DNA of 64,000 bases from Epiperipatus broadwayi (taxonomy: Eukaryota; Animalia; Onychophora), in NCBI GenBank assembly GCA_028023455.1, contig JAQFVV010000009.1, forward strand, positions 8,494,001 through 8,558,000. The letters are read 5' to 3'. The position numbers and the translations under genes are program-made. The notes under the pieces are model-generated. The model was not told the DNA's origin, did no database searches, and was given only the letters and a program-made list of their open reading frames with translations. The number at the start of each line of letters is the position of its first letter. The first letter of the stretch is position 1. This document shows, piece after piece, positions 2,805 to 33,400 of the stretch.

Positions 2805-5800
2805 TTATAATGAAGCGGAAAATATATTACACATATTTTTGCATCACTGTCTGGTGATTCAAAACCTTGAATCAGAGGTTTAAACCCAGCTATATATGTG
2901 TTAAATCACTAGAGAATGAAAGGACGTACCTACAAGTTTTAAAACCCTCCTTTATTTTTGTACTTTCATAAGTTAAACATTTTTATTATAAAAGAATATT
3001 TAATAAATTTAAGTCGGAAATATTTAAATTTCCATTCCCTTTAAGTAATCATGCATGTGTGTTCAAGATTTGCAAAAATACATTATTGATAAAAAAATAT
3101 TTTTCGTTATTAAATATTATGTATATTTATTGTACAGTTCGCGTATTTTATTTTATGATGCAATACCAAAGAAAGTTCTAGAGAGTAATTAAAATAACTC
3201 TGAAATGTATAAATAAAAGAATATTCTAGATTTAATTTAAAAAGGGTAATTAATAAATTAAAATCCCTTAGCAAACAGAATACTAATGAAAATTATATCT
3301 TTTAAATCTATTTCCATTCTCGAAATAGATTAAAACAATACTCTCTAGAACTTGTCGCATCATCGTTGAAAATAAACAATAGGTGCAGTCTGGCCACTTA
3401 ATGGACATCCGGGCCAAATAGAGCCGAAATTTTAGGCTGTCTCTTGGTTCGGCATCTTAAACAGTGTTGCAGAACGGACCCACATCAATTTAAATTTTGA
3501 AATATGAATCCGGAATAGAGGGTCTAAATTTGCTTCCTTTTTCTTCTCCAAAAATCGTTTCCACACTGCTATGCTAACCCACCATCTCCACTTATGGACT
3601 GCCTAATTTAAATGCTGTAATAACTATCTCAAGAAGCCAGCCATTATTTTTCAAAGCTTTGCCTTGCTTAACCGTGTTGTCCTCATTTATAATTTTACAT
3701 TTTCCAATCCGTACGTACGTCAAGACATCAGGAAACGGAAGGTAAATCCTAATCATGCCACTAATATGAACTCTTTCAAAACTTTCATTTTAAAATCTAA
3801 ATCATTTGTAATATAACTCTTTTATTTAAGCATGACATTGTAATTCTAATTGTAACCATTCTATAACGTAATGACTTTCTCTTTCTGTTATAAAAATCTA
3901 ATGCACGAATTTATAATTTTGTTTTTTTGTAATGCATTTCTTTAATTGGTTTCACAATTTCTATTTTTAATATTTTAAATGCGGTAAACTTTTATTTTTA
4001 ATATTATAAATTTCGTATGATTTAATTTAATATGCTAATAGTTTAATCGAGCGAACCAATCCTAAATTTTCTTATATTAGATATCCTAGATATTATAGGA
4101 TGTTAAATCGTAAATGTAAGCTTTCTTACCTAATTAAAAGTTCGCTCGATTGAGTAACATTTTTAAGTTATTCTATTTGCTTAGTGGCAGATTATTCGCT
4201 GCTACATTTTACTATGTCACTTTATTACCATGTTTACGCTATTGATTTTATTTTCAAATTATATTTTAAAGTAAACTTAATGACCTACCTTTGCTGTTTT
4301 TTTTATTACATGGTCAATCATTTGCCCATAACGCCATCTAGTATGCTAATTATTTATGAATTAATTACTAGTTAGCATATTAATATTTGTTTAATGAAGG
4401 GAACAATATTCCCTCTTTTATGTGTGACATCCTAACTAATATTAAAGGTCATTTGCGTACCTTTCGAGAGGGATCAAATTATTTCATATCATTATGCTAG
4501 ATTCTATTAAATTACGAGGGCCTTAATCCACATATCGGAATTATTAAGAACCCGATTTATATTTGTTATTAGCGTTGCTTGGCTTACATAATGTTATGAA
4601 ATTACCTCGCTTTGCTTTGTCAAACTAAACCCCGGAGAAACGGGATTCTTTTACTTAATGGCATAACCGTGAATGGAACTCGGAAGCACCGGCTCCAGAA
4701 TGTCAGGTTATCATTTAGGCTCTGCATGGGTTAACACTGGAAAACAGACCGTGATAATTCCTACGAGACCACCCTTTTCAAATGCTAACCTGTCACGTGT
4801 ACAGGCACATTTCATATTCTTATATTATTGATGAAGGGTTCGTCCTAAAATGAACTCGATCTATTCTAGAGTTATGATTTAATCAGCACCGCAATTCTTG
4901 TTTAATATTTTAATATTTGCCCATTTTAAATCTGTAAGACGTAATGCCATGATTTCTAAATCCAGCTCATATTTTCGTTTATATTATAAGTTAGGTAATG
5001 TCATTTTAAAGCTTACTTAAGCTAACCGCCCTCTCATTGAGACAATGCTGAATGCGCTAACAAATAATGCTAAGTAAATCTTTTCCAGTCAGAAAAGAAT
5101 AGAATAAAATACAAATAACTTTTCTATTTTAAGGTCTAATGACTATTGAAGTGAATAATGTAAATTATAAAATATTTTTGTACGTGGTTCAAATGAACCA
5201 TAATAAATTGATATAACTTATATCCTATTTATGTTTTAAGGTCACTCAATTTTAATAAAGTAATCCTAGTGACCACGTTATATAATATGGTAAAATTGGT
5301 ATCTACTATTAGCATATTAAACCGCATCTTTTGAATATCTGTATATTTTTTTGAATCATAATATCCAATCACAGATTTGCGCATTATTTAATCAGTAACT
5401 TATGTTCTATTATATAATTTTTCAATACGCAAATCAGCATTAATAACGTAAAACCCATAATTCTATTAGTGTCATATATAAATAGATTCGCAACTGTTTG
5501 TAAAGTAAATATCTGTTTATTCATTTTTTTCTAATTAATCTTAATAAATTATTAACTATATAATTATTATTTAAGTCTGCTTTGCCTCATGATTTATGCA
5601 TACACATCATTAATTAGATTGCATTATATATAGCTGATTTCCATTGACCTTAAGCCAATTTCTAGATTTATTAATGAATTTTATGAAAAGTCTAATTATA
5701 ATCTTGAGCTAGTTCATTCTGTTGGGGGGCTGGGTTTGAAGCCTGGTAGTTTATAATTCCCTGTAGATCTCGTTTCTCCGCTGTTGCTCCGGAACGGGTA

Positions 5801-18720: not shown

Positions 18721-21699
18721 TAACATTTGAAAAGGGCACCAAATCAAATTCTGAAAAAGGCTTTTTATGTATATTAAAAAAAATTGATATTTATATAGCT
18801 GTTGTAAAGAATTTATTATTTTCTGATTATTATTTTATGGAAGAATAGCATAAAGATATTTATTCTTTTCCAATTTCAATTATTACTATTGTTTTATACT
18901 ATAATAGACTAATCATTAAAGACATTTTGTCATTATCAGGTTATTTTGTAGTATTGAGACTGGATTGCATTAATATCAATATTAATGCTCTTATTAACTT
19001 CTAGTTATTCTAACTTGGGAAATTCTGGGTATAATTAAGATTTCTTATCTTTTACTTATGCATTAGAAAATACAGTTCACAATGAGGCAATTGGCAGAGT
19101 AGGTTAACAATAAATTCTTAGTTATGGATTCAAATGGAATTCTCCCATACCTACCATTTAAGCTATATTAACCTTTTCTCAGTTGCCATTTTATTGTGGG
19201 TACTTTTTATTACAGCACTAAAATTCTAATCTACATTGATTTGTAAATTCTAGAAAGGAAATATATTCTACTTTTTTTAGTCTATTGATGGTGCTTTTTT
19301 AAATTTTTTTCGTGTAATTCATATACTAATCGTTTTTACTATTTTGATTAAATTTTCAATCAATTTTCTATTAGATAACTTTGTTTGACTTTTTATTGAG
19401 TAATTTGATAATTTAAATTTATATCAGTTATGATTTCGGTAATTACTTTTTAAAACGATATCAATTAGTGAGAAGTTTAATATACTATTTACATTAAATT
19501 AAATCTCCAAGAGTCAAGAAGTGCACCAATTTAAATGAAAAAAAGTACATTCAAAGTTAATCCATATTTTGAAATTTCTTTGTAACCCCAATTAATATTT
19601 CTTTTTAATGTAAGAAGTAAACTAATTACAGAATTCAATTGAAATATTCTATTTTATTTAATCATAGTTAATCAATCATTTGTAGATTTTTTGTAGTTTT
19701 TTTTTAATCTGTATAGTTGGAATATTTTATCTATAGGTTTAAAACTTAAAAAATTTTATTTGCTGTATTACGACATTTGTTATTCTACTATATCACCTTA
19801 GCTGTCATCATTAATTTGTAACCAATACTTTGAAAAACAAATAGCTATTTACTGTAGCAATTTTTAAAAAATATGTACCATTTTTGTAAAAAATGTTTTT
19901 TTTTAATGTTAGCCAATTTATATTGCTGACATAATAGATACTGGCATTGTACAAGTAATATATCTTCTTCACAGAACAAATGGCAAGATTTACATCAAGA
20001 AAAAAAAAGCAAATTGTAATTTATTTCTAAATTAATAAAAACTGTGAGCATATACAATAAATTGAATCAAAGCAAAAATATGATCTACTTAAATTAAGTT
20101 TTATGTAATAATTAGATGACAATAAAATTGAAAACCAATATATCTTTTATCACAAAATATAAACATTCTTGCCAAAAAAAATATGAAGTTTTATTTATTA
20201 TATAATCAAAAATTATTCTGATTTTATGCACTGTATCAAAAATAATTTTATCTTAAACTATTTAGTACTCCTATAGTATATAATTCATGCTTTTAATTGA
20301 TCAGCATAATCTTAGTATTGAGTAAAATAAAAAATAAAATGTCTGCATTTATTTTTGCATTTATAAATAAGTATATATTAAATAACATATATTTATATTG
20401 CAATAAAAAATATTAAATAAAACAAAGCAAAAGGTAGTTTGTGTACAAAGTGTATATAAAATAAAAACAAGCAAAAGATTAACACTTAATAAACTTTTGT
20501 ACCAATATATTCAACAATAAATGTGGACATTTTATTTTTTATTAGCTCCAGTTTTACTATCAAGTTCCAATTTCAGTGATTTTTTTCTTTTTGTTTTACT
20601 TGCTGAAATGTAATTCAATTCAATGCTTTCATTTGATAGGTTTATATGAAATGAAAATAAGCAAAAAGTAGTCCATGCACAAAATGGATATTAAATTAAG
20701 GAAAGAAAAGAAACTTAAATCTATGGTAATGTCTTAAATAAAAGCAATAAACAAATCAGATACACACGTAAGGCTAAATAAACAATCATTTATTACAGCC
20801 TACAAATAAAAGTATTTAATCACTGAAATGAAAAATTAACACTATAAAATAAAATGTTCCCATTTACTGTTGAATTTATGGCTACAAAATTATGTTAAAT
20901 ATCAAGCGTTTGCATATTTTAATTTCATACATACTTTATGCATGGATTATCTATTATTTTCTTTTATTTAATACACATATTTTTTGCAGAGTATATTATT
21001 TTCATTTTATTTAATATATACTTGCACCATAAATTCAAGAATAAATGCAGATATTTTAATTTTATTGATTATTTTTACTTTCACTCAATTGTAAATCTAA
21101 TGTAGCTCCATCAATGTAGACTACACTATACAAGCAATCAACTATTCTTTATGGATGTAGGAAATAAAAATTACCTTCATTTTTTAATTTCACTTCATTC
21201 ACACAATATATAATGCAACAATTGCCATTTTTTCCAAGTCATAGTTTAAAAAAAAAAAAATTGCACCTCAACCCAGGAAAGTTAAGAATTTTTTTTTTTA
21301 AGATATGGAATAAAATAATGAAACATTTCATTAAAAATATTTACATATTTTTTAAAATATTATTTACTAATATTGAAAAAATAATTTTAATTAATGACTT
21401 TTATTCTTGAACTATCTCAACATCAGGCTAGTAGGCTATAATTTTTATATTTAAACCTGTAAAAAGACTCACATAATTTTCAATGTTTTGATTTAATTTT
21501 AATATAATTGACATTTGAAAATATTTAATCAAAGAAATATATCAAACAAAAAATTGAGAAAAATTCATATGAAAAAATTTCCAAATGTATATGCATGCCC
21601 TTATTTGATTTACATTTATTAGAAATCATTTAGAAACAATAGGACATTCAAATTCCAGTAAAAAAAAAAAAACATTGAAAAACAAAGCATAAAAAGATA

Positions 21700-22263
21700 A
21701 AGATGAGTTTTGCAATGACTATATAAATTAATTCATGAATCACAATTGAACATATTGATCTTTTAAACTGTTTGTTGACATTTTCTAAGACTGGTTTTTA
21801 ATTTCTTCAGTAGCAAACATTTATTTTTTGAAAGATTTCAATGCCTTGCCTAATAATTCTATCCAAAGACATATTCTTTTTACTGTTTCTTTGAAACTTT
21901 TTATAATAAATAGAATATGACTCTTCTCATGAAATTAATAGCACTGTGTACATTTAATTTAGTTGAGGTAGAAATATTAATATCATTAAATATCCTATTT
22001 TTAAAATTGTTAAATGCAGGAGCATAATATTAGAATCTATACTGCACTATCTATCTAAGTCTGTATCTAAAAGGCTATGGTATATTTAAATTGATTTTCA
22101 TTCACATGCTGATAACAATTCAAAAAAAAAAAAAAAGCTAAAGATATTTTTTTCCATCACTGACAGATAAAGCACCTGATTTATTGAAAATTAATTACTA
22201 CACCAAAATGCTTATATGTTTCAAATATTAAAAATATTAATTGCAAGAACATCATAATTATTA
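21700..22263 (+). pseudogene. Upstream part of a decayed hAT transposase split by the foldback unit (tentative)
   Basis: LKGYG at ~22067-22081 resembles hAT GQGYDG. Its distance to RHDAI (32341), after removing 22272-32244, is ~290 nt, as expected for hAT. Weak on its own; start approximate. Confidence 0.3.
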
Positions 22264-22276
22264 GAATTTTGAGTAC

Positions 22277-24013
22277 TCTAACCCGACCTGCTATGTGGCT
22301 GCTAGAGGCGCTGTTTCTGTGTTAGCACACAGAACATACAGGGTAGGTGCCTCAAAAGCAGATGACGCATTTTCCTGCTGCTAGGTGGCGCTGTTCACCA
22401 TGTGTACGCACAGGAACCTTCCACAAGCTAGCTGGCGCTGATTGCCATAAACACATCTAGCTTAGGTGTCATCTGCTATCAGAAACTACCAAGATTCTAG
22501 CCCACTACGTGGCGCTGTTTCTCCATGTTACACACAGTAAAAACAGCAACCTCTAAATGCCTCCTTGCTAGCGTTTATGAACATAGTACTTAAAGCATTC
22601 AGGGCCTATAAGGTACAGGGGTGAATAATTTATAAGTCATAACTATTTAAATATAGGGTCAAACGTAATAGTTTTACATTCTATTTCACCATTTCATGAA
22701 TCAATGTATTTTTAAATTATGACTTTGTAAAAAGCGATCTGTTTTTTTTAATTATTTACTCTAAAAGTGTTTTTTTTTAAAAAATAAATAAAACAAAAGG
22801 TAATTTTTATGACAATCTAAAAATCGGTCTGTTTTTTTTTTTTTTTTTTAAAAAAAGCTAATTCCTACGGCAGTATTTCTTTCAAAACTGTATTATTTTA
22901 AAAGATTATTGTTTGTAAAACTTTTTTTTTTACACTTTCAATTAATATTTTCAATAAATTTTAAAATAATACAAATTATATTTCGGTTTATAGATTACTA
23001 TTTCGAAAAATAAAGTGTTATTTGCGTGCTGGGTATACCGCGTGCTTGTTACTCGCAAGCAATATTTCGAAGATCTGTTTATCAAAACTTCCTTTCACAA
23101 TAATATTCAAGGCATAAATATTAATTGAAATTGTATTTAAAATTTTAGAATCATTTTAATAACTAAAAATGTCATATACTCACAACGAAATTTCAAAATA
23201 ATAAGTACCGTATGAGAAAGGTAAGATATTATACAGAGGCAGAAAAAAAAAAAAGATTTAGAGCAAAATATATATACATTTAATATCTTTATTGATGGTT
23301 GGAATTTAAAAAGTTTCTTTCAAAACTGATGCTCTTGTTAGGCTTGTATACTGTTAAAATTAAAACTATTAGTCCTCATAAATAATTTGGAAGACATTGC
23401 CTGTAAAAATTGGATGATCATTGAAAATTATATATGATCTTAATAGCCTAAAATTCAGAAGCCTGATAGTACTGTCTTTGCCAATGCACTGTTTCTTTCT
23501 TTCATTATTGATACATAAGTAGGAACAGGTAACCACATTTATTAAAAATCTTCCTTTACAGACACATAGGTATATTTCCTTTTAGTAGCAAGTTATTTCT
23601 ACCAAAAGCACTCCAACCAAGTTTAATTCTATGATTAATTTCATTCATTATGTTTCCATCTGTATTAATAATCTGACCAAGGTGTTTGTAAGTGTTAACT
23701 TCTTCTAACTCATCATAATCAATCTTTATTTTCATATTTTGAACAAATCCATTAAACATTACTTTAGTCTTTTTAACATTTATCTTTAGTCCTACTTTCA
23801 TCTGATAACTCCTGCAACATTTCCTGCAGCTCTGAAGCATAAGTTGTAAAAATAACTACATCATCTGCAAAATCTAAATGACTTAAATAATCTCCATTTA
23901 CTTTCACTCCTTTAGCTTCCCATTTTAATCCACAAAATATTTCTTGCAGCACTGCTGTAAAAACTTTTGGAGATATGGAATCACCCTGTCTTACACTCTT
24001 CTCAATGTTGACT
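22277..24013 (-). repeat. Left inverted arm (GC-rich terminal module + unique AT-rich DNA + RTE RT fragment)
   Basis: Reverse complement of 30454-32231 along its length, roughly 90-95% identical by eye. ORF 23556..23840 is the RTE fragment. Confidence 0.92.
22297..22517 (+). promoter_or_regulatory. Cluster of CTCF-like motifs in the left terminal module
   Basis: GCTAGAGGCGCTG (22301), GCTAGGTGGCGCTG (22380), GCTAGCTGGCGCTG (22427), CCACTACGTGGCGCTG (22502), compared with the CTCF core CYAGRKGGCGC. Confidence 0.45.
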
Positions 24014-25750
24014 AATAATCTTTGTTAAAAAATAAATTTACTGATAAAGATTTCATAAGAGTTTTCCAATTAGCTTCTAAAAGCTTATAACTAAATCCTC
24101 TAATTCATTCCCAGACAGAATTATTTAGACTGCAAGTGAGACTTTGTTAAGAGAAAGCAAAATTATGCTGGAAAATGAGACACCAACAATACAAATCTAA
24201 TATCATTTATGTTGAGAGAAAAATCTATTAAATCTTAAACTAGACAAATCTATAAGCATTCTTCCTGCTAACAAGAGCAATGTAACATTTGTAAATGGAT
24301 AATAGTAATTATAATACAATAAGAGCTTCTCCCAACAGAGCTAAAAGTCTCATACTAGCTATGAATCACAACTGTAAATATTATTCAGAAAGCATCCCTG
24401 ATCACAGCTATTTCAATGATTCAGAAAAAATTAGATTGACATATTTTGGCAAAAATTCCATATCTTTATGGTCATCTAAAATCAATAAAGGCCAGGTTCC
24501 ATTAAGATCTATTGTTAATTCTGAAAACTCACTACATCAAAAATTCTAATGTTCTTAGTCCTTTGGCATACAAGAGACAGTTCTGTGTTAGAGATTCTAA
24601 GAAAATTGTAGAATTAATCAACATGAAAAGTAAAAGAACTGACATATTGGTAAATTTTGATGTGAAAAACTTAATCACAAAAGTACTCTGTGATGAAGCA
24701 TTATCTAACGTAAAAAAAAAGATTAAATAACAATAGTAGTGTACAAACCAGAATAATTCTTCCAATTGATAGTTTAATTACACTTAACATTCTGCACAGC
24801 ATACTATTATTATATACTATAGAATTCTTCCAACAAAATCAAAAGATGCTTTTTGAATCCTTATTGCTATCTCTGATCAGCAATATTTACATGGAAGAAC
24901 TTGAAATTACAACCATAAATAAAATTCTATCTACAATTAAAGTCTGGCTTTTCTATGACCATATGGTAAAGCATTACTACAAACATTCTGGATACTATCA
25001 ATAATTATGTTCTTTTAATTAAATTCACAATAGAATTAAAACAAGAACAGACACTACAGTTCTTAATTTTCTTTTGACAAGATTCCCTCATAGCAAAATC
25101 AAAATTACAATCAACAGAAAACTGACACCCTCTAAGCAGAATAAAAATTCTTAATCAGAAACCAATAACTTGGAAAAAGAAAAATCATATAGCATAAACT
25201 CTCATGAAAAATACTTATCCATCAGCTATCATTATGAAATAGCCAACTAAAAGAAACACCATAAGAAAAAACAATTATAGGTATTAAAGCGTATCCATAG
25301 ATATTACAGCTAAACTAAAGAAAATCTGCGATCAGTATATTAAGATTCCTTTCCAAAGTCATAAGTGCCCTATGAAAAATTCTAACTTCTATAAAACACA
25401 AACTGCAAATATTGAAAAACAAAAACCGCATCTATGAAATACCACGTGAATTTGGAAGAACATATATGGCTGAAATCATCTGACTTATTTCAAAATATGT
25501 AATTAAAAGAGCAAAAAGTAATGATTAAAAAGAAAAACCAAATGCACCTAAAATACATTGGACAAAAAAAATAACGGGCAGAAAGTACAAGTAAAATTTG
25601 TATAAACCATTTACATTTATAATAGATAACTTCACAAATCAGTCTAATGTAAATAATTACTAATATTTCAAAACTACTCATTAACCTTGCCCTTAAAAAA
25701 ACTGGAGAAACCAAGAGAATCTTCATAGATAAATATATAAAATTTCTAGT
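24014..25750 (+). mobile_element. Decayed Penelope-like retroelement (RT + GIY-YIG)
   Basis: ILPANKSN..MDNSNY (PADKGN), SKINKGQVPLRSIVN (PKIHK..PLRPIV), VNFDVKNLITKV (FDV.SLFT), SNIYMEELE, IYEIPREFGRTY (GIY-YIG). Confidence 0.85.
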
Positions 25751-25764
25751 AACTTGATTTTTCA

Positions 25765-25860
25765 GAATAGCCTAATTAGTAAGAGCAAGCATTACCTTAA
25801 ATTCACAAAACTAAAAATCCAAGGTTCAATTTCCATGCCAGTACTGTTACTGGTAAGGCC
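25765..25860 (+). mobile_element. tRNA-derived SINE head (tentative)
   Basis: A-box-like TAGCCTAATTAG and B-box-like GGTTCAATTTCC. The same AGAATAGCCTAATTAG string recurs near 62197. Confidence 0.35.
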
Positions 25861-28122
25861 AGCAACATTTGAAGAAGAAATGAAAAAAAACAACAACACT
25901 CAAAATGTTGTAATAAATTAATCTGTATGCTTTGCTAACAGTTGAATGTATTTAAAAGTTTAAATAAAGTTTGATATCTTTTAAAAATATTTCATAATTA
26001 ATAACAGATGATGGAAATAGTTCAATATATAATTACAGGTAAAATCCCTATCATCACAAATTTTCAGATAAACATTTCCTGTTTTCAAGTCAATATGTAT
26101 AATGCTTGGGACTGTTTTTGTATCTCCAGAATAGTCCAAGACTTATTTGAACTGAAACACCTATTGTAGTAAGGAATTTGACTGCAATGGTATGTTGACT
26201 AGATATTTTGAGGTTTTATTAATCAACTATCTGGCTGGGGGATTTAACTATTAATGGAAAGTTGTTTATACACGTATATCATATTTTGAAATTCTGAAAA
26301 AAGCTAAAATCGATAACTTTTACTAAATTCATTTACTTTTGTTTTTATAGAATATTTGCTTATCAATAGTTGTTCTTTATTAAAATTAAAACTGCAAAAT
26401 TTTTATATGTTCATTCATCACCTGTGTTATTCACCTCCAAATCATAAGTCTTTGACTTAGTAAATGCAACTTATGCAAAGCATTACAATCAGAATGACAT
26501 TGCTTTGGGCGAGATGAAAATCTATCAGAAGATAAGCCTGTTTTATAGCAGTCAAGATAATTTCAGGTCTAATGATGTATATTAAAATCACTGTTATTAA
26601 AAAGCTAGTAATTGTATTTGAGTTGACCGAATGCCAGTCCATTGATTCTCCCTCCCTCAACACACACACAAACATTAATTTTTTGAATATTTAGCACTGC
26701 ACATCATGCTCTTGATTGAATGCCTCCAGTAGTTAAGTGACTAAATTTATACTTAAATAAAATTGGAGTGAATAAGGCATGGGCATTCACTATTTCATCC
26801 TAGCTCAGATTAATAAAAAAGGATCAATGGTCAAAGGTTTTCTCTGTCTGTTTCCTTTTTTTCTCCTGAAAATTTTTTAAAATTATTTGTTCCCTAATTG
26901 TTTTTTAATTAAGATATGAGCATTGAAAGTCAGAAATCCAATGCACACAGTAATTGTTTTTACTATAAAGTGCTATTAAAATGGTTTAGTATCTTTGGAC
27001 TTCTCCATAGAATTTCATTTATAACTTGTACTGCAGCTACACCTTAATTTTGTAACTGGGCAATTATGTAGCCTACAACTATTATAACTATCCAATTTTT
27101 GTATACTTGAACCTAAATATTTAAATTATTTGACTAATCTCATAAAAATAAAAATTACAAACATCCTCAAACTGCATTAGGGAAGGGGGGAAGCATAATT
27201 GGTGATTCATTTTAAAGATAATAATATACAAAATAAAACTCTAATTTCATTCATAATCTAATTATGTACCAATAAAAGCTAAATACCTAAACATATAATA
27301 ACCTCTTAATTCTTATGATATTTAAGATAATTTAGAGTTGAACCTAACAATATGAAAAATTTGGTAAAAATATTATTCATTAGTAACTCTTTTGTCTTAC
27401 TTTCAAATAATTCAAATTAATGATACGAAAAAAGATATAGAAAGTATCTTTCATATTAGGAACAAAGAAATTATAATTCTTTAACATACCACTCAAAAGA
27501 AAATTACTTCTTAGATTTATTTATATTCATTAATTATAAAATTGTTAATTATAAAGCATCCATTAGAAATATACTTCAAATAATATATATAAACATGCTT
27601 TATAAAAATGTTTTCAATTTAATAACTCAAGGAAATTACTTTAATATGTTGACTTTCCCAGTATCATTATCTAATCTAATTGTTGCTGTTGCATTTTTAT
27701 AAATATTCTTTAAAATATGACAATATCTTGTATCTATACCTGAATGATATCTCTAGAATTGTCATTATGATGTATTGTAGCATTTTCCGGTAGATTTCAA
27801 CAATTATTAACTTATGGGGTTGTGATCAAACAGAAAACAGTGGCAAACTTAAAGGAGATAATAAATATACTTGAATTTATTTACTGGTTAGAATCTCTAC
27901 AGATTTTCTAATATAATGTTTGTGAGTAGTTAGGTGGTTTAATGAATCTATAAATGAATTTCTAAATAGACAAATTTTAATATATATCACCCAACAGAAA
28001 CACTTAAATATTTACCAATTTCACAATATCAAATAAACTATAATTTACTTTGATTAATCATTAAGATTTGATTTAATGCAAGAAATTGTCTACACTCAGG
28101 AGGTTACAAATTTCTTGCCATC

Positions 28123-30958
28123 CTATTAATTGAAAAGAAACCCTTTGATTCCTCTTGGAGGCCGCCTTAAAGAAACTGAGCAAGGCAAATTCTTAATGTC
28201 CACTCCATACGTTCTTGTCATTGCAGCTGTTATTACTATGTGATTATTCATATACTATATAAACATGGATGGGCTGCTCACCAACACGCATTAGCCAGCG
28301 CGACGAGGTTATTGGATTTTTACCTCTGAGTTTAAGATCAAAAAACACCATGGACTTTCTTCTCAGTTGCCTGATAAGGCACAATGAATGCTTGTGTAAA
28401 TGATATTTTTCCAATATATATACAATTATGACAGACAAAAATAAATCATGGCCCTTATTCCCAGGAGACTGTAAAGTCACCAACCAAGGCAGGAGTTGGT
28501 GGCCGAATGCAGAGGCTGCTCAGAATCCCCTGATTGTGGATACAGGCTGCCATTTGATGATGCCTTTTTTTATTTAGGTACTTACAACACCAGATCACTT
28601 TCAAGTGAAGGAAGCTTGCAAGAGTTAGAAGAAAAACTGTCTTATATTAAATGGGATATTATTGGACGTTGTGAAGTTAGAAGAAAAGGTGAAGAGACAA
28701 TTGTTTTAAAAAGTGAACATGTACTCTATTATAAAGGCACAAATATTAGAAATACAAGTGGAGTAGTATTCATTATAAATAAAAAGTGGAAGAACAACAT
28801 TGTGGAGATTGATGGTGTATCGGACAGAGTGGCAAGATTAGTTATACAACTTAATAGCAGATACCAAATGCAGATAATTCAGGTTTATGCCCCAACAAGT
28901 TCTCAAAGTGATGAAGTAGTAGAAGATTTTTATGTGGATGCACAAAAGGCTTTTGATCAGAGTTAACAACATTTTAAAATTGTTATAGGAGACTTTAATA
29001 TTAGAATTGGTAAACAAATGAAAGACAAAAGTGCTGGTGGTAATTTTGGTTATGGTAATAGAAATGAGAGAGGACAGAGACTTGTGGAGTTTGCAGGAAA
29101 AGGAAAACTTTATATTATGAATTATTTTGAGAAAAATGTTAAAAGGAAATGGACATGGAAGCATCCAAATGAAAGTACAGCAGAATTGGATTATATTTTG
29201 ACTAACAGAAAATACATATTTCAAGATTGTAATATTCTTAATAAATTTAACAGAGGAAGTGATCATCGGTTAGTAAGATGTGAAATACATGTTAATGCAA
29301 AACTAGAGAGACAAAAATTATTAAGAAAAACAATATTTACAGTTGATATTCATAATTTTCAGAAATATTCTAATGAATTTAAAATAGAACTTACAAATAG
29401 GTTTCAAGTATTAGTAGATTTTGAACATGATTCACATTTGAATGAAATTAATAAGAAAACAACTGATTCACTTTTAAAAACTGCAACAGCACTTGATCAA
29501 TAAAATTTCTACTGAGACTAGAGAATTTGTGAAGAAAAGAAGGAATATGAAGATATACAAAAATGATGCATTAAAAAGAATTGAATATCTCAAATTTTGT
29601 AAAATGATGCAGAAAAGATTTGAAAATGATATAAGAAAGTATAACTGTGAAATAGCAAGGAAAGCAGCAGAAGGGAATGAAAGTCTCAAAAGTGTAAAAC
29701 AACATTTTGGTATTGGTAGGAAATTCATATCTGCAATAAAAAAAAAAGCTGGAATTATTACTAAAAAGAGAGATGACATCATGAAATGGATAGATGACTT
29801 TTATAAAGAATTATATAGTAATAAAGAACAAATACCTCCTATATCTATGACATCTTTTGAATTACCCAGAATTTTAAATGAAGAAGTGAGACATGCAATT
29901 AAATATATGAAGAAAGAAAAGACTCCAGGTAATAGTAGAATTATAATTGATATATTAAAAGAAGCAGGAGAAAAAATATAATTTTTTTTAGCAATGTTAT
30001 ATACCAAATGTCTAAATGATAAAGATTACCAGATGATTGGAAGTATGCAGTATTAATATTATTATTTAAAAAAGATGATAAAGAGGATATTAGAAATTAC
30101 AGACCTGTCAGTCTTTTATAAGTTAAATACAAAATTTTTACCAAGATAGTTAGAACTCGTCTACAGAGAACATTGGATTTCCCTCAACCAAGAGAACAAG
30201 CTGGATTTAAAAGTGGTTTTAGTACAGGAGATCATATCCAGGTCTTTAGAAAAGTTATAGAAAGGATAAATGAATATGAGTTGCCATTATGCTTTGGATT
30301 TGTAGATTATGAAAAGGCATTTGAATCTATAAACTTTTCTTCAGCGATTAAAACATTGGATCATCAAGGTATAGACCCAAGATATAGTCAAATTTTAAAG
30401 AATATTTATAAAAATGCAACAGCAACAATTAGATTAGATAATGATACTGGGAAAGTCAACATTGAGAAGAGTGTAAGACAGGGTGACTCCATATCTCCAA
30501 AAGTTTTTATAGCAGTGCTGCAAGAAATATTTTGTGGATTAAAATGGGAAGCTAAAGGAGTGAATGTAAATGGAGATTATTTAAGTCATTTAGATTTTGC
30601 AGATGATGTAGTTGTTTTTGCAACTTATGCTTCAGAGCTGCAGGAAATGTTGCAGGAGTTATCAGATGAAAGTAGGACTAAAGATAAATGTTAAAAAGAC
30701 TAAAGTAATGTTTAATGGATTTGCTCAAAATATGAAAATAAAGATTGGTTATGATGAGTTAGAAGAAGTTAACAGTTAAAAACACCTTGGTCAGATTATT
30801 AATACAGATGGAAACATAATGGATGAAATTAATCATAGAATTAAACTTGGTTGGAGTGCTTTTGGTAGAAATAACTTGATACTAAAAGGAAATATACCTA
30901 TGTGTCTGTAAAGGAAGATTTTTAATAAATGTGTTTTACCTGTTCTTACTTATGTATC
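28123..30958 (+). mobile_element. RTE-clade LINE, same family as 14975-18187; intact 5' end, 3'-truncated
   Basis: Shares the 5' start CTATTAATTGAAA. Motifs LGTYNTRSL, QVYAPTS, GSDHRLV, FVDYEKAFES, RQGDSISPK, DFADD. Homology stops after CTTACTTATGTATC; multiple stops. Confidence 0.92.
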
Positions 30959-32231
30959 AATAATGAAAGAAAGAAACAGTGCACTGGCAAAGACAGTACT
31001 ATCAGGCTTCTGAATTTTAGGTTATTAAGATCATATATAATTTTCAATGATCATCCAATTTTGACAGGCAATGTCTTCCAAATTATTTATGAGGACTAAT
31101 AGTTTTAATTTTAACAGTATACAAACCTAACATGAGCATCAGTTTTGAAAGAAACTTTTTAAATTCCAACCATCAATAAAGATATTAAATGTATATATAT
31201 TTTGCTCTAAATCTTTTTTTTTTTTTCTGACTCTGTATAATATCTTACATTTTTCATATGGTATTTATTAAACCTATTATTTTGAAATTTCCTTGAGTAT
31301 ATGACATTTTTAGTTATTAAAATGATTCTAAAATTTTAAATACAATTTCAATTAATATTTATGCCTTGAATATTATTGTGAAAGGAAGCTTTGATAAACA
31401 GATCTTCGAATTATTGCTTGTGAGTAACAAGCACGCGGTATACCCAGCACACAAATAACACTTTATTTTTCGAAATAGTAATCTATAAACCGAAATATAA
31501 TTTGTATTATTTTAAGATTTATTGAAAATATTAATTGAAAGTGTAAAAAAAAAAGTTTTACAAACAATAATCTTTTAAAATAATACAGTTTTGAAAGAAA
31601 TACTGCCGTAGAAATTAGCTTTTTTTTAAAAAAACAAAAAACAAAACACAGACCGATTTTTAGATTGTTGTAAAAATTACCTTTTGTTTTATTTCCAAAA
31701 AAAAAACACTTTTAGAGTAAATAATTAAAAAAACAGATCGCTTTTTACAAAGTCATAATTTAAAAATACATCGATTCATGAAATGGTGAAATAGAATGTA
31801 AAACTATTACGTTTGACCGTATATTTAAATAGTTATGACTTATAAATTATTCACCCCTGTACATTATAGGCCCTGAATGTTTTAAGTACTATGTTCGTAA
31901 ACGCTAGCAAGGAGGCATTTAGGGGTTGCTGTTTTTACTGTGTGTAACGTGGAGAAACAGTGCCGCGTAGAGGGCTAAAATCTTGGTAGTTTCTGATAGC
32001 AGACAACACATAAGCTGGATGTGTTTACGGCAATCAGTGCCACCTAGGTTCTTGGTAGCAGACGATGTAAGCTGCCAGTTAGCTTGTGGAAGGTTTGTGT
32101 GTATGCATGGTGAACAGCCCCACCTAGTGGCAGGAAAAAGCGTCGTCTGCTTTCGAGGCCCCTACCCTGTAGGTTCTGTGTGCTAACGCAGAAACAGCAT
32201 CTCTAGCGGCCACATAGCAGGTCGGGTTAGA
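30454..32231 (+). repeat. Right inverted arm
   Basis: Begins inside the RTE at AGTCAACATTGAG and ends GGTCGGGTTAGA. Carries an extra ~35-40 bp subunit near 32042-32080. Confidence 0.92.
31955..32212 (-). promoter_or_regulatory. Cluster of CTCF-like motifs in the right terminal module (opposite orientation)
   Basis: Minus strand shows CCACTAGGTGGGGCTG, CCTAGGTGGCACTG, CTACGCGGCACTG and GCCGCTAGAGATGCTG. Confidence 0.45.
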
Positions 32232-32244
32232 ATAACGAATTTTG

Positions 32245-33400
32245 TAAATCCACAAATCAAAAATAATTCTTATTTTTGAATTTAATCAGTTCAAATTAAA
32301 AACTTCATCATCAAACCTAAATTGCATTTCCATAAACTGCGTCATGATGCCATCCATAACTGCTCTAACACATTGGTAATAAAAAGGTATAACAAAAATA
32401 GAAGAGCTGATAAACACTTATTTATAAGCGTTCTTTTTGTTATAAGATCACCAATCCTTGGCTTATCAAATCAATAAAAGCAATAAATAAATCACATTTT
32501 TGAATTATGACTCTTGTTGTTACATTTGCAAAGCAGCAAAAAACATGTCTATGGTGTTAAACATATCTCTAAAATCATTTGATTTATTGGTTCATTCTTC
32601 TAAAAAAAAAAGGAACTCATCATTCAATAAAATCCTTGAAAAGACCTTTTCTCTAATGAATAACAATGCTATTCCAGATAATTATTGCAAAACTTTTCTA
32701 TCAAATATGTTTTTATAAATTGGAAGGAAGCATTCTTAAAATCAGATGGCTCTTTTCCATATGTCCATATAATTCTAAACAAAGTCCAATAATTTTAAAG
32801 CTAATATATAATGATCATTTAAAACTTTACATATATTATCAGGATGTGCAGCTTTTCTATTACAACTACAAAAAGCTATTTGGTTGGATATCTCTGCTCA
32901 AATTTAAATGAATCAGTAAGATGTATGCATTATTAAAAACAAACACTTGAAATTTTGAATCATTATTCAGAAAATGATCAAAATACCTCGTCATCTTGAA
33001 ATATTACTTCTATGATACAAAAGATTTATTATGAAGATTTTTTTAAATTAACAGATGAAGCATATATAGAATTAAAACAGATTAAAGCTGACATTATTCC
33101 AGCTGATGAAGAAAGAAGTTAAAAATTTCAAAAATATTTCTGATGAATTGTCAAAAAATTCAACAACATTCAATAAAAAAAAATATTAAATATTATGAAG
33201 CAATAATCTCTTACTGTGAATGTGAAAAATGCTTCCAAAAATTTGACAGATTAAAAACAATTGAAATGTTCATGTTTTACCCACGTCACAATGTTGCTAT
33301 GACTAAAAAATACATTTTCATTATTTATAGTGTAAAATAAAGTCCTTCTTCAAAGTAACATAAAGTTAAAAGCTCATAATCCAAATCTTAGCAATCACTT
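32245..33400 (+). pseudogene. Decayed hAT transposase (downstream part)
   Basis: RHDAI at 32341-32355 (TRW..RHDA motif), QKIYYEDF near 33018, CECEKCFQKFDRLKT near 33212 (resembles S..AERSFS.L.R.KT). Confidence 0.5.

Follow-up and report, generated by a model that had tools for sequence, protein, structure and literature searches.

The segment at positions 22272–32236 of a 64,000-nucleotide stretch of the Epiperipatus broadwayi genome (C9:8494001–8558000 in a 5.6-Gb assembly of 18,588 contigs; the whole stretch, AT-rich with a GC content of ~27%, is hereafter named the window) is very probably an old, inactive copy of a ~10-kb family of non-autonomous cut-and-paste DNA transposons. This confidence does not extend to the superfamily that mobilises the family, which is weighed separately below. 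An earlier sequence-only reading had already taken the segment for a non-autonomous DNA transposon with an 8-bp target-site duplication (TSD), and a multi-copy family, perfect duplications at seven of eight complete pairs of ends and a reconstructed empty site bear this out. In the proposed course of events, long interspersed element (LINE) sequence would have lain inside an ancestral element, an inverted copy of ~1.85 kb from one end, with 0.6 kb of the 3'-truncated internal LINE in it, would then have arisen at the other end, and a reverse transcriptase (RT)-like element would subsequently have inserted into one arm. Only after the arm duplication and this insertion would the composite have been amplified. 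A transposase acting in trans, most likely one of the intact Merlin (IS1595-type DDE) enzymes of the genome, would bind the subterminal motifs, cut at the GG ends and insert the element with an 8-bp stagger. After its death, the window copy would have lost its terminal GG, and its arms would have drifted to 95.7% identity, fastest in the CpG-rich ends.

The family was recognised from the genome-wide occurrence of its ends. The terminal 377 nt used as a query gave 3,326 candidates in the genome (genome-wide candidate counts given here are first-look candidates), with many inverted pairs ~10 kb apart. Thirteen 10-kb genome stretches were compared, and the complete unit of arms and interior was matched in 12 of them at 92–97% identity. 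Alignment of more than 30 element ends with their flanks displayed two end types, A (GGTACTYTAACCCGACCTGCTATGTGG..., the type of the window) and B (GGTYGTGGTTKGCAGACTGTACTG...), which start with GGTAC and GGTYG, respectively, and converge after ~35 nt; both carry the terminal 5'-GG that characterises Merlin. Searching the whole genome with both end patterns, allowing at most 3 mismatches, identified 506 A-type and 846 B-type ends, 1,352 altogether, while the reversed patterns used as controls gave 0, so that at least ~670 elements are present in the genome. Inverted end pairs were frequently spaced at ~10.0–10.5 kb. Perfect 8-bp duplications flanked seven of eight complete pairs, the window copy included (GAATTTTG, AATGCATT, AAAATTTC, CATAATTC, GAAAATTC, ACTTTTTC and GATTGATC), and the uniform length in all seven matching pairs agrees with both the 8–9-bp TSDs of Merlin and the 8-bp TSDs of hAT.

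The B subfamily is the younger part of the family. Four stitched B copies of 10,415 bp or nearly so were 99.2–99.5% identical to one another over ~10.4 kb, indicating that this subfamily moved very recently, and their arms displayed 97.8–99.1% identity. All four share a 455-bp insertion in the LINE part (L034:8494–8948 = C15:1891183–1891637, with a 14-bp direct repeat GAATTATATAGTAA) that is absent from the A-type copies including the window (29808–29821); it is probably a small retroposon marking the B lineage. Several small contigs begin ~100–140 nt inside a B-type end (C595:100–123, C608:127–150, C899:116–139, C1177:96–119, C2103:142–165 and C4907:91–114), and the assembly seems to be interrupted by 10-kb long-armed copies of near-identical sequence. 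Mini-derivatives of 121 bp, 229 bp, 380 bp and 1.8 kb with perfect A- or B-type ends (C6218:4493890–4494010, C69:1105306–1105534, C9:656328–656707 and C6295:174357–176150, respectively) represent members of the family resembling miniature inverted-repeat transposable elements. A third, more diverged end type (GGGTAATGTTACCCGAC..., in L006 at ~position 230, C74:~3258489, minus strand) has the subterminal motif region in common with the others, which suggests a wider group of related elements.

The insertion site was reconstructed by a script joining 21700–22271 to 32245–32800. The resulting empty site was contiguous across the junction in five paralogues (L051, L048, L049, L054 and L045), of which L051 showed no gap in the ~30 nt spanning the junction and had the 8-mer position in a single copy. 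Since the paralogues align straight across the empty site, the element was inserted there with duplication of its target. The two flanks belong to a repeat with 446 (left) and 529 (right) candidates at 68–77% identity. Removal of the unit had been expected to rejoin a hAT transposase relic; a single older repeat was indeed rejoined, but no frame in the flanks matched a hAT family, and weak RT signals were found instead. These comprise an RVT_1 match beside the junction-equivalent in L051 (E 0.015), an FKYLG-type match to a LINE RT in L048 (E 8e-4), and a frame in L050 continuing the flank repeat that we take to be a LINE RT C-terminus. Naming the repeat by Atlas and one BLASTP comparison was uninformative. 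Judging from these matches, the flanking repeat is probably an old LINE RT relic and not hAT. Two short inverted-repeat pairs were also observed just upstream, at 20411–21081 (I6, 131 nt at 76%; I11, 55 nt at 71%).

The inverted arms described by the sequence-only reading were confirmed by repeat search as five collinear blocks (22261–24013 versus 30454–32247, 86–98% identity), by blastn (left 22274–24013, right 32234–30454) and by global alignment, which gave an arm-to-arm identity of 95.7% (74 mismatches in 1,733 aligned columns). The limits it had set at 22277–24013 and 30454–32231 proved too narrow, as the full left arm consists of 22272–24013 plus 27655–27748 and the full right arm extends over 30360–32236 (Table 1). 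The 8-bp direct repeat GAATTTTG was read on both sides at the places where it had been seen. It had been placed 5 nt outside each arm; however, these 5 nt are the decayed terminus of the element itself (GGTAC in the family; in the window, AGTAC at the left end and, as reverse complement, GTTAT at the right end), so that the duplication directly abuts the element ends. The 9-mer ATGTTGACT occurs in two copies around 24014–27645 but only once in the right arm, demonstrating that the left arm was once continuous and that this segment was inserted into it secondarily. The window holds four matches to GCTAGnnGGCGCTGwTT-like motifs where chance would give 0.01, every one of them located in the two element ends, and these motifs (GCTAGnnGGCGCTG) are plausible candidates for transposase binding sites. 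No tandem arrays were found by TRF in 22000–32500.

Table 1. Features of the element and its insertion site, in window positions
Feature	Position	Strand	Basis
Whole element, 9,965 bp; very probably an A-type copy of a ~10-kb non-autonomous DNA transposon family with long terminal inverted repeats	22272–32236		full-length matches at 12 other places, 92–97%; paralogous empty sites span the junction
Left 8-bp TSD GAATTTTG	22264–22271		read directly; abuts family terminus set by multi-copy alignment
Right 8-bp TSD GAATTTTG	32237–32244		read directly
Terminal module, GC- and CpG-rich, with subterminal repeats of a GCTAGnnGGCGCTGwTT-like motif behind a decayed GGTAC terminus	22272–22600	+	motif count, GC, arm identity
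Left arm, outer part, 1,742 nt	22272–24013	+	repeat search, blastn, global alignment
Non-LINE outer module of left arm	22272–23509	+	LINE boundary by homology to LINE relative in L040
Inverted duplicate of LINE RT segment in left arm	23510–24013	-	RVT_1 E 4.9e-08 at 23776–24024(-); 97.4% identity to 30454–30958
Secondary insertion, 3,632 bp, RT-like, possibly a Penelope-like relic, splitting the left arm	24014–27645	+	9-bp duplication ATGTTGACT at 24005–24013 / 27646–27654
Inner remainder of left arm	27655–27748	+	inverted match to 30360–30453; repeat pair I7, 103 nt at 94%
Unique centre; 27749–28474 unassigned, then LINE 5' part	27749–30359	+	without inverted partner; Exo_endo_phos_2 at 28967–29500, E 5.6e-06
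LINE fragment, apurinic endonuclease (APE) and RT, stop-broken, 3'-truncated at ~30958	28475–30958	+	Pfam; extends from centre into right arm
Right arm, 1,877 nt, uninterrupted	30360–32236	-	repeat search, blastn, sequence reading, global alignment
Left half of older target repeat, probably LINE RT relic	21932–22263	-	446 first-look candidates at 68–77%; alignments span the junction
Right half of the same older repeat	32245–32360	-	L051 aligned to empty-site position 687, ~window 32359

Both arms contain a LINE piece with an identical truncation point, as the sequence-only reading had proposed: Pfam placed RVT_1 at 30122–30691(+) with E 4.5e-20, and the same RT piece lies inverted in the left arm. 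A related LINE in L040 (72–79% identity) does not stop at the equivalent of position 30958 but reads on into the RT region with 'YGSETW', which shows that the embedded fragment is 3'-truncated. Such a 3' truncation at ~30958 is not a product expected of target-primed insertion at that junction. As an unbroken LINE is present on the right side only, the left LINE segment is the copy. A further LINE copy of the embedded family (L004:2413–2786 on C8211, 80–85% identity) was observed ~500 nt from an A-type copy and continues past the truncation point of the element; such proximity may indicate a target bias or simply that LINEs are abundant.

No transposase domain was detected by Pfam in any open frame of the element (58 window frames and 51 locus frames), where only RT, APE and chance matches were found, so the interior lacks a transposase as had been noted; the longest frame in any copy examined is 263 aa and comes from the LINE. 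The 3,632-bp insertion, previously named a Penelope-like element relic, has no Pfam match, and a 130-aa frame of the insertion from copy L037 fell into an Atlas neighbour cluster with 68% RVT_1 (score 0.93). An RT-like relic, possibly Penelope-like, is therefore plausible but weakly supported. The reported short interspersed element (SINE)-like head gained no support, as ARAGORN and Rfam found no tRNA or Rfam family in the element.

The arm limits, the LINE truncation and the 3.6-kb insertion flanked by the 9-bp repeat are common to all family copies examined; hence arm growth and insertion predate the amplification, and the proposed growth of the arms at this locus does not hold. From this shared structure, the long LINE-bearing arms appear to have arisen once, in the ancestor of the family. 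The arms of the window copy are 89.9% identical in the outer 330 nt and 96.7–97.4% identical further in. The terminal module has a GC content of 0.47 in the window versus 0.53 in a young copy, where its CpG count is at expectation, and CpG-type transitions account for 12 of the 33 arm mismatches in the window terminal module. Given this concentration of CpG-type changes, the identity gradient is attributed to the terminal module, which is GC-rich, losing its CpG sites faster. A two-stage origin of the arms, considered from the gradient (88% outside, 98% inside), was rejected in favour of this decay.

The arms of the window copy are 95.4% identical to each other and 94–97% identical to the arms of other copies; being about as far from each other as from the arms elsewhere, they were not homogenised in place. 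In the active lineage, the A and B types differ on both arms by 17 substitutions and 2 indels, and the terminal ~30 nt also differ at both ends. Arm-specific differences common to A and B number 0, and single-arm changes amount to one on each B arm. Since the differences between A and B sit on both arms, the arms of the active lineage evolved in concert. A more far-reaching and rather unlikely extension is that an active process holds the two arms identical in the lineage that transposes, including a coordinated replacement of the terminal ~30 nt from A to B, and that the arms of dead copies are free to drift. Arm regeneration would then be coupled to transposition, for example with one arm templating the other in gap repair or in a hairpin intermediate, and these would be the first Merlin-type elements with ~1.8-kb terminal inverted repeats (TIRs) and 10 kb of retroelement cargo.

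Two other origins for the structure were considered. Replication errors can yield long, highly similar inverted repeats, and some small contigs of the assembly break ~100 nt inside such arms, so a transposon could in principle be mimicked by an assembly artefact or by an inverted segmental duplication that happened once, at this locus. This has almost no probability left: the whole 10-kb unit is found on many contigs, where its flanks differ and it has 8-bp duplications of its own, which also contradicts assembly duplicates of a single locus; 1,352 ends stand against none in the controls; and the window copy sits within a multi-Mb contig. The paralogous empty sites, contiguous in all five cases, exclude a simple inverted segmental duplication. 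Very improbable, too, is a composite (macro)transposon, in which two independent 1.2-kb elements in opposite orientation, by chance on either side of LINE-rich DNA, would be mobilised as one through their outer ends. Such a unit might be represented by the outermost 1.24 kb of either arm, which contains no LINE, and two solo arms (L020 and L026) stop within ~50–80 nt of the boundary between the outer module and the LINE. However, in the window element the subterminal anchor motif beside the terminus is confined to the two outer ends and occurs at no inner boundary, no separate 1.2-kb element bounded by both ends and a TSD of its own was seen among the loci compared, and the arm homology passes unbroken out of the outer module into LINE sequence for 0.6 kb, truncated at one and the same point on either side, which is not expected from two independent insertions. 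Both solo arms are of the B type, stop at the same point past the boundary and continue into unrelated sequence, and in L026 a ~98-nt direct repeat (3–100 and 3023–3120) brackets the region.

For a single long-armed DNA transposon family, the mobilising superfamily is a separate question, on which Merlin is given about an even chance, hAT is held improbable and the remainder goes to other or unknown sources. Merlin is characterised by terminal 5'-GG, TSDs of 8–9 bp and TIRs of 24–462 bp (PMC8101967), and it is the best fit because the GG ends and the 8-bp duplications of the family are among its published hallmarks. DDE_Tnp_IS1595 gave 5,573 candidates in the genome, many of them intact at 318–386 aa. 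Dozens of Merlin frames have equal scores and an intact length of 318 aa, with further groups of 325, 351, 370 and 386 aa; several Merlin families look recently active in this genome. Comparing 150 PF12762 matches with the listed ends and a B-specific arm marker, two coincidences of Merlin open reading frames (ORFs) with B-type arms were found, one match (C14:14071942) lying 3.3 kb inside an end at 14075648 and the other (C6233:4445446) ~5 kb inside an arm marker at 4449983. Both ORFs may be nested insertions, and with two coincidences at inconsistent distances a Merlin link by coordinates was not accepted as proof. The end pairs C12:3869795–3874843 (5,049 bp, B-type) and C61:7068871–7074975 (6.1 kb, A-type), both of atypical size, are candidate places for an autonomous partner; another atypically sized pair lies at C6225:~6196600–6204000.

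A hAT or P transposase moving the same non-autonomous family, as the sequence-only reading had proposed from the TSD length, is an unlikely source. TSDs of 8 bp are usual in hAT and are also known from P (7–8 bp in the P superfamily with Galileo, which has a THAP/P-type transposase), intact hAT-like frames of ~612 aa are present in the genome, and L014 carries, 1.1 kb inward of an A-type end, a hAT-like C-terminal relic. Set against this, hAT elements have short TIRs beginning with YARNG and the target consensus nTnnnnAn, and P ends are CA, whereas the ends here are GG..CC and begin with GG, and the target has A at position 2 and T at position 7 (over only seven sites). The relic in L014 comes from a family of much greater age, mostly stop-bearing, whose closest other copy is 78% identical at the protein level; it received no Pfam call at E 0.01 or better, and the family has no listed match at the other listed A- or B-type ends. 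The L014 ORF was accordingly rejected as a partner. This frame, L014:478–822(+) (C12461:132285–132629), which we take to be a hAT-like C-terminus, has 4,378 candidates in the genome, mostly with stops, and a few distant relatives intact at 612–613 aa.

Several points weigh against the transposon history with a Merlin source preferred here. An autonomous partner with A or B ends was not identified; the two coincident Merlin ORFs lie at different distances from the arms, and other members of their groups had no perfect B end on their contig among the first 100 matches listed; and published Merlin TIRs reach only 462 bp. The inverted duplication of the arms is inferred from structure alone, and the count of concerted arm changes is based on four B and four A copies, the latter giving only two usable sequences for each arm. 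Moreover, one of the eight complete pairs, on C15, lacks matching duplications. This copy (L013/L021, C15:1883664–1894053) is a full-length B element flanked by different 8-mers, AATTTCAA versus ATTTATTT, and may be a recombinant of two copies, comparable to chimeric Galileo copies.

For annotation, the results bring at least ~670 ten-kb elements, roughly 7 Mb, into one family. Its young B subfamily (99.3% alike) coincides with contig breaks and is relevant to assembly quality and to the risk of ectopic recombination, as Galileo is for inversions. The family also offers a clean, datable case of a long TIR that would have grown by swallowing an internal LINE fragment before an amplification burst, with both ends changed in concert. 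If the Merlin link is true, the known TIR range of Merlin would be extended about four-fold. None of these findings overturns current understanding.

Among known systems, Galileo, a Drosophila member of the P superfamily, is the closest, especially in its non-autonomous 2-TIR copies. Its non-autonomous copies have the longest TIRs, internal sequence is recruited into the TIRs, and ends and centres are exchanged (PMC3573991). Foldback-like long TIRs, their extension by internal sequence, multiple putative binding-site motifs in the TIRs and fixed short TSDs are common to Galileo (PMC3573991, PMC4168063) and the present family, as are a centre shared by subfamilies whose ends differ and the occurrence of the longest TIRs in non-autonomous copies. 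Galileo differs in its 7-bp TSDs, TIRs of up to 1.26 kb and P/THAP-type transposase, whereas the family here displays 8-bp TSDs, GG ends, 1.8-kb arms with a LINE fragment and a 10-kb body. With Merlin (IS1016/IS1595-related; Feschotte 2004 via PMC8101967), it shares the terminal 5'-GG, the 8-bp TSDs and a genome with abundant intact transposases. Compared with the reported Merlin TIRs of 24–462 bp, its arms are far longer, and it is at most a candidate member. Foldback (FB) elements of Drosophila and Mutator-like elements have TSDs of 9–10 bp, as against 8 bp here, and FB-type arms consist of tandem subrepeats, unlike the present arms, in which TRF found no arrays. Kilobase inverted arms, little or no coding sequence and mobilisation in trans are nevertheless common to FB, Tetris and Tm1 of the Mutator/Foldback type (PMC4079207, PMC3169594). 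The family is a Galileo-like long-TIR element of a known kind, and the copy in the window is a dead member of it.

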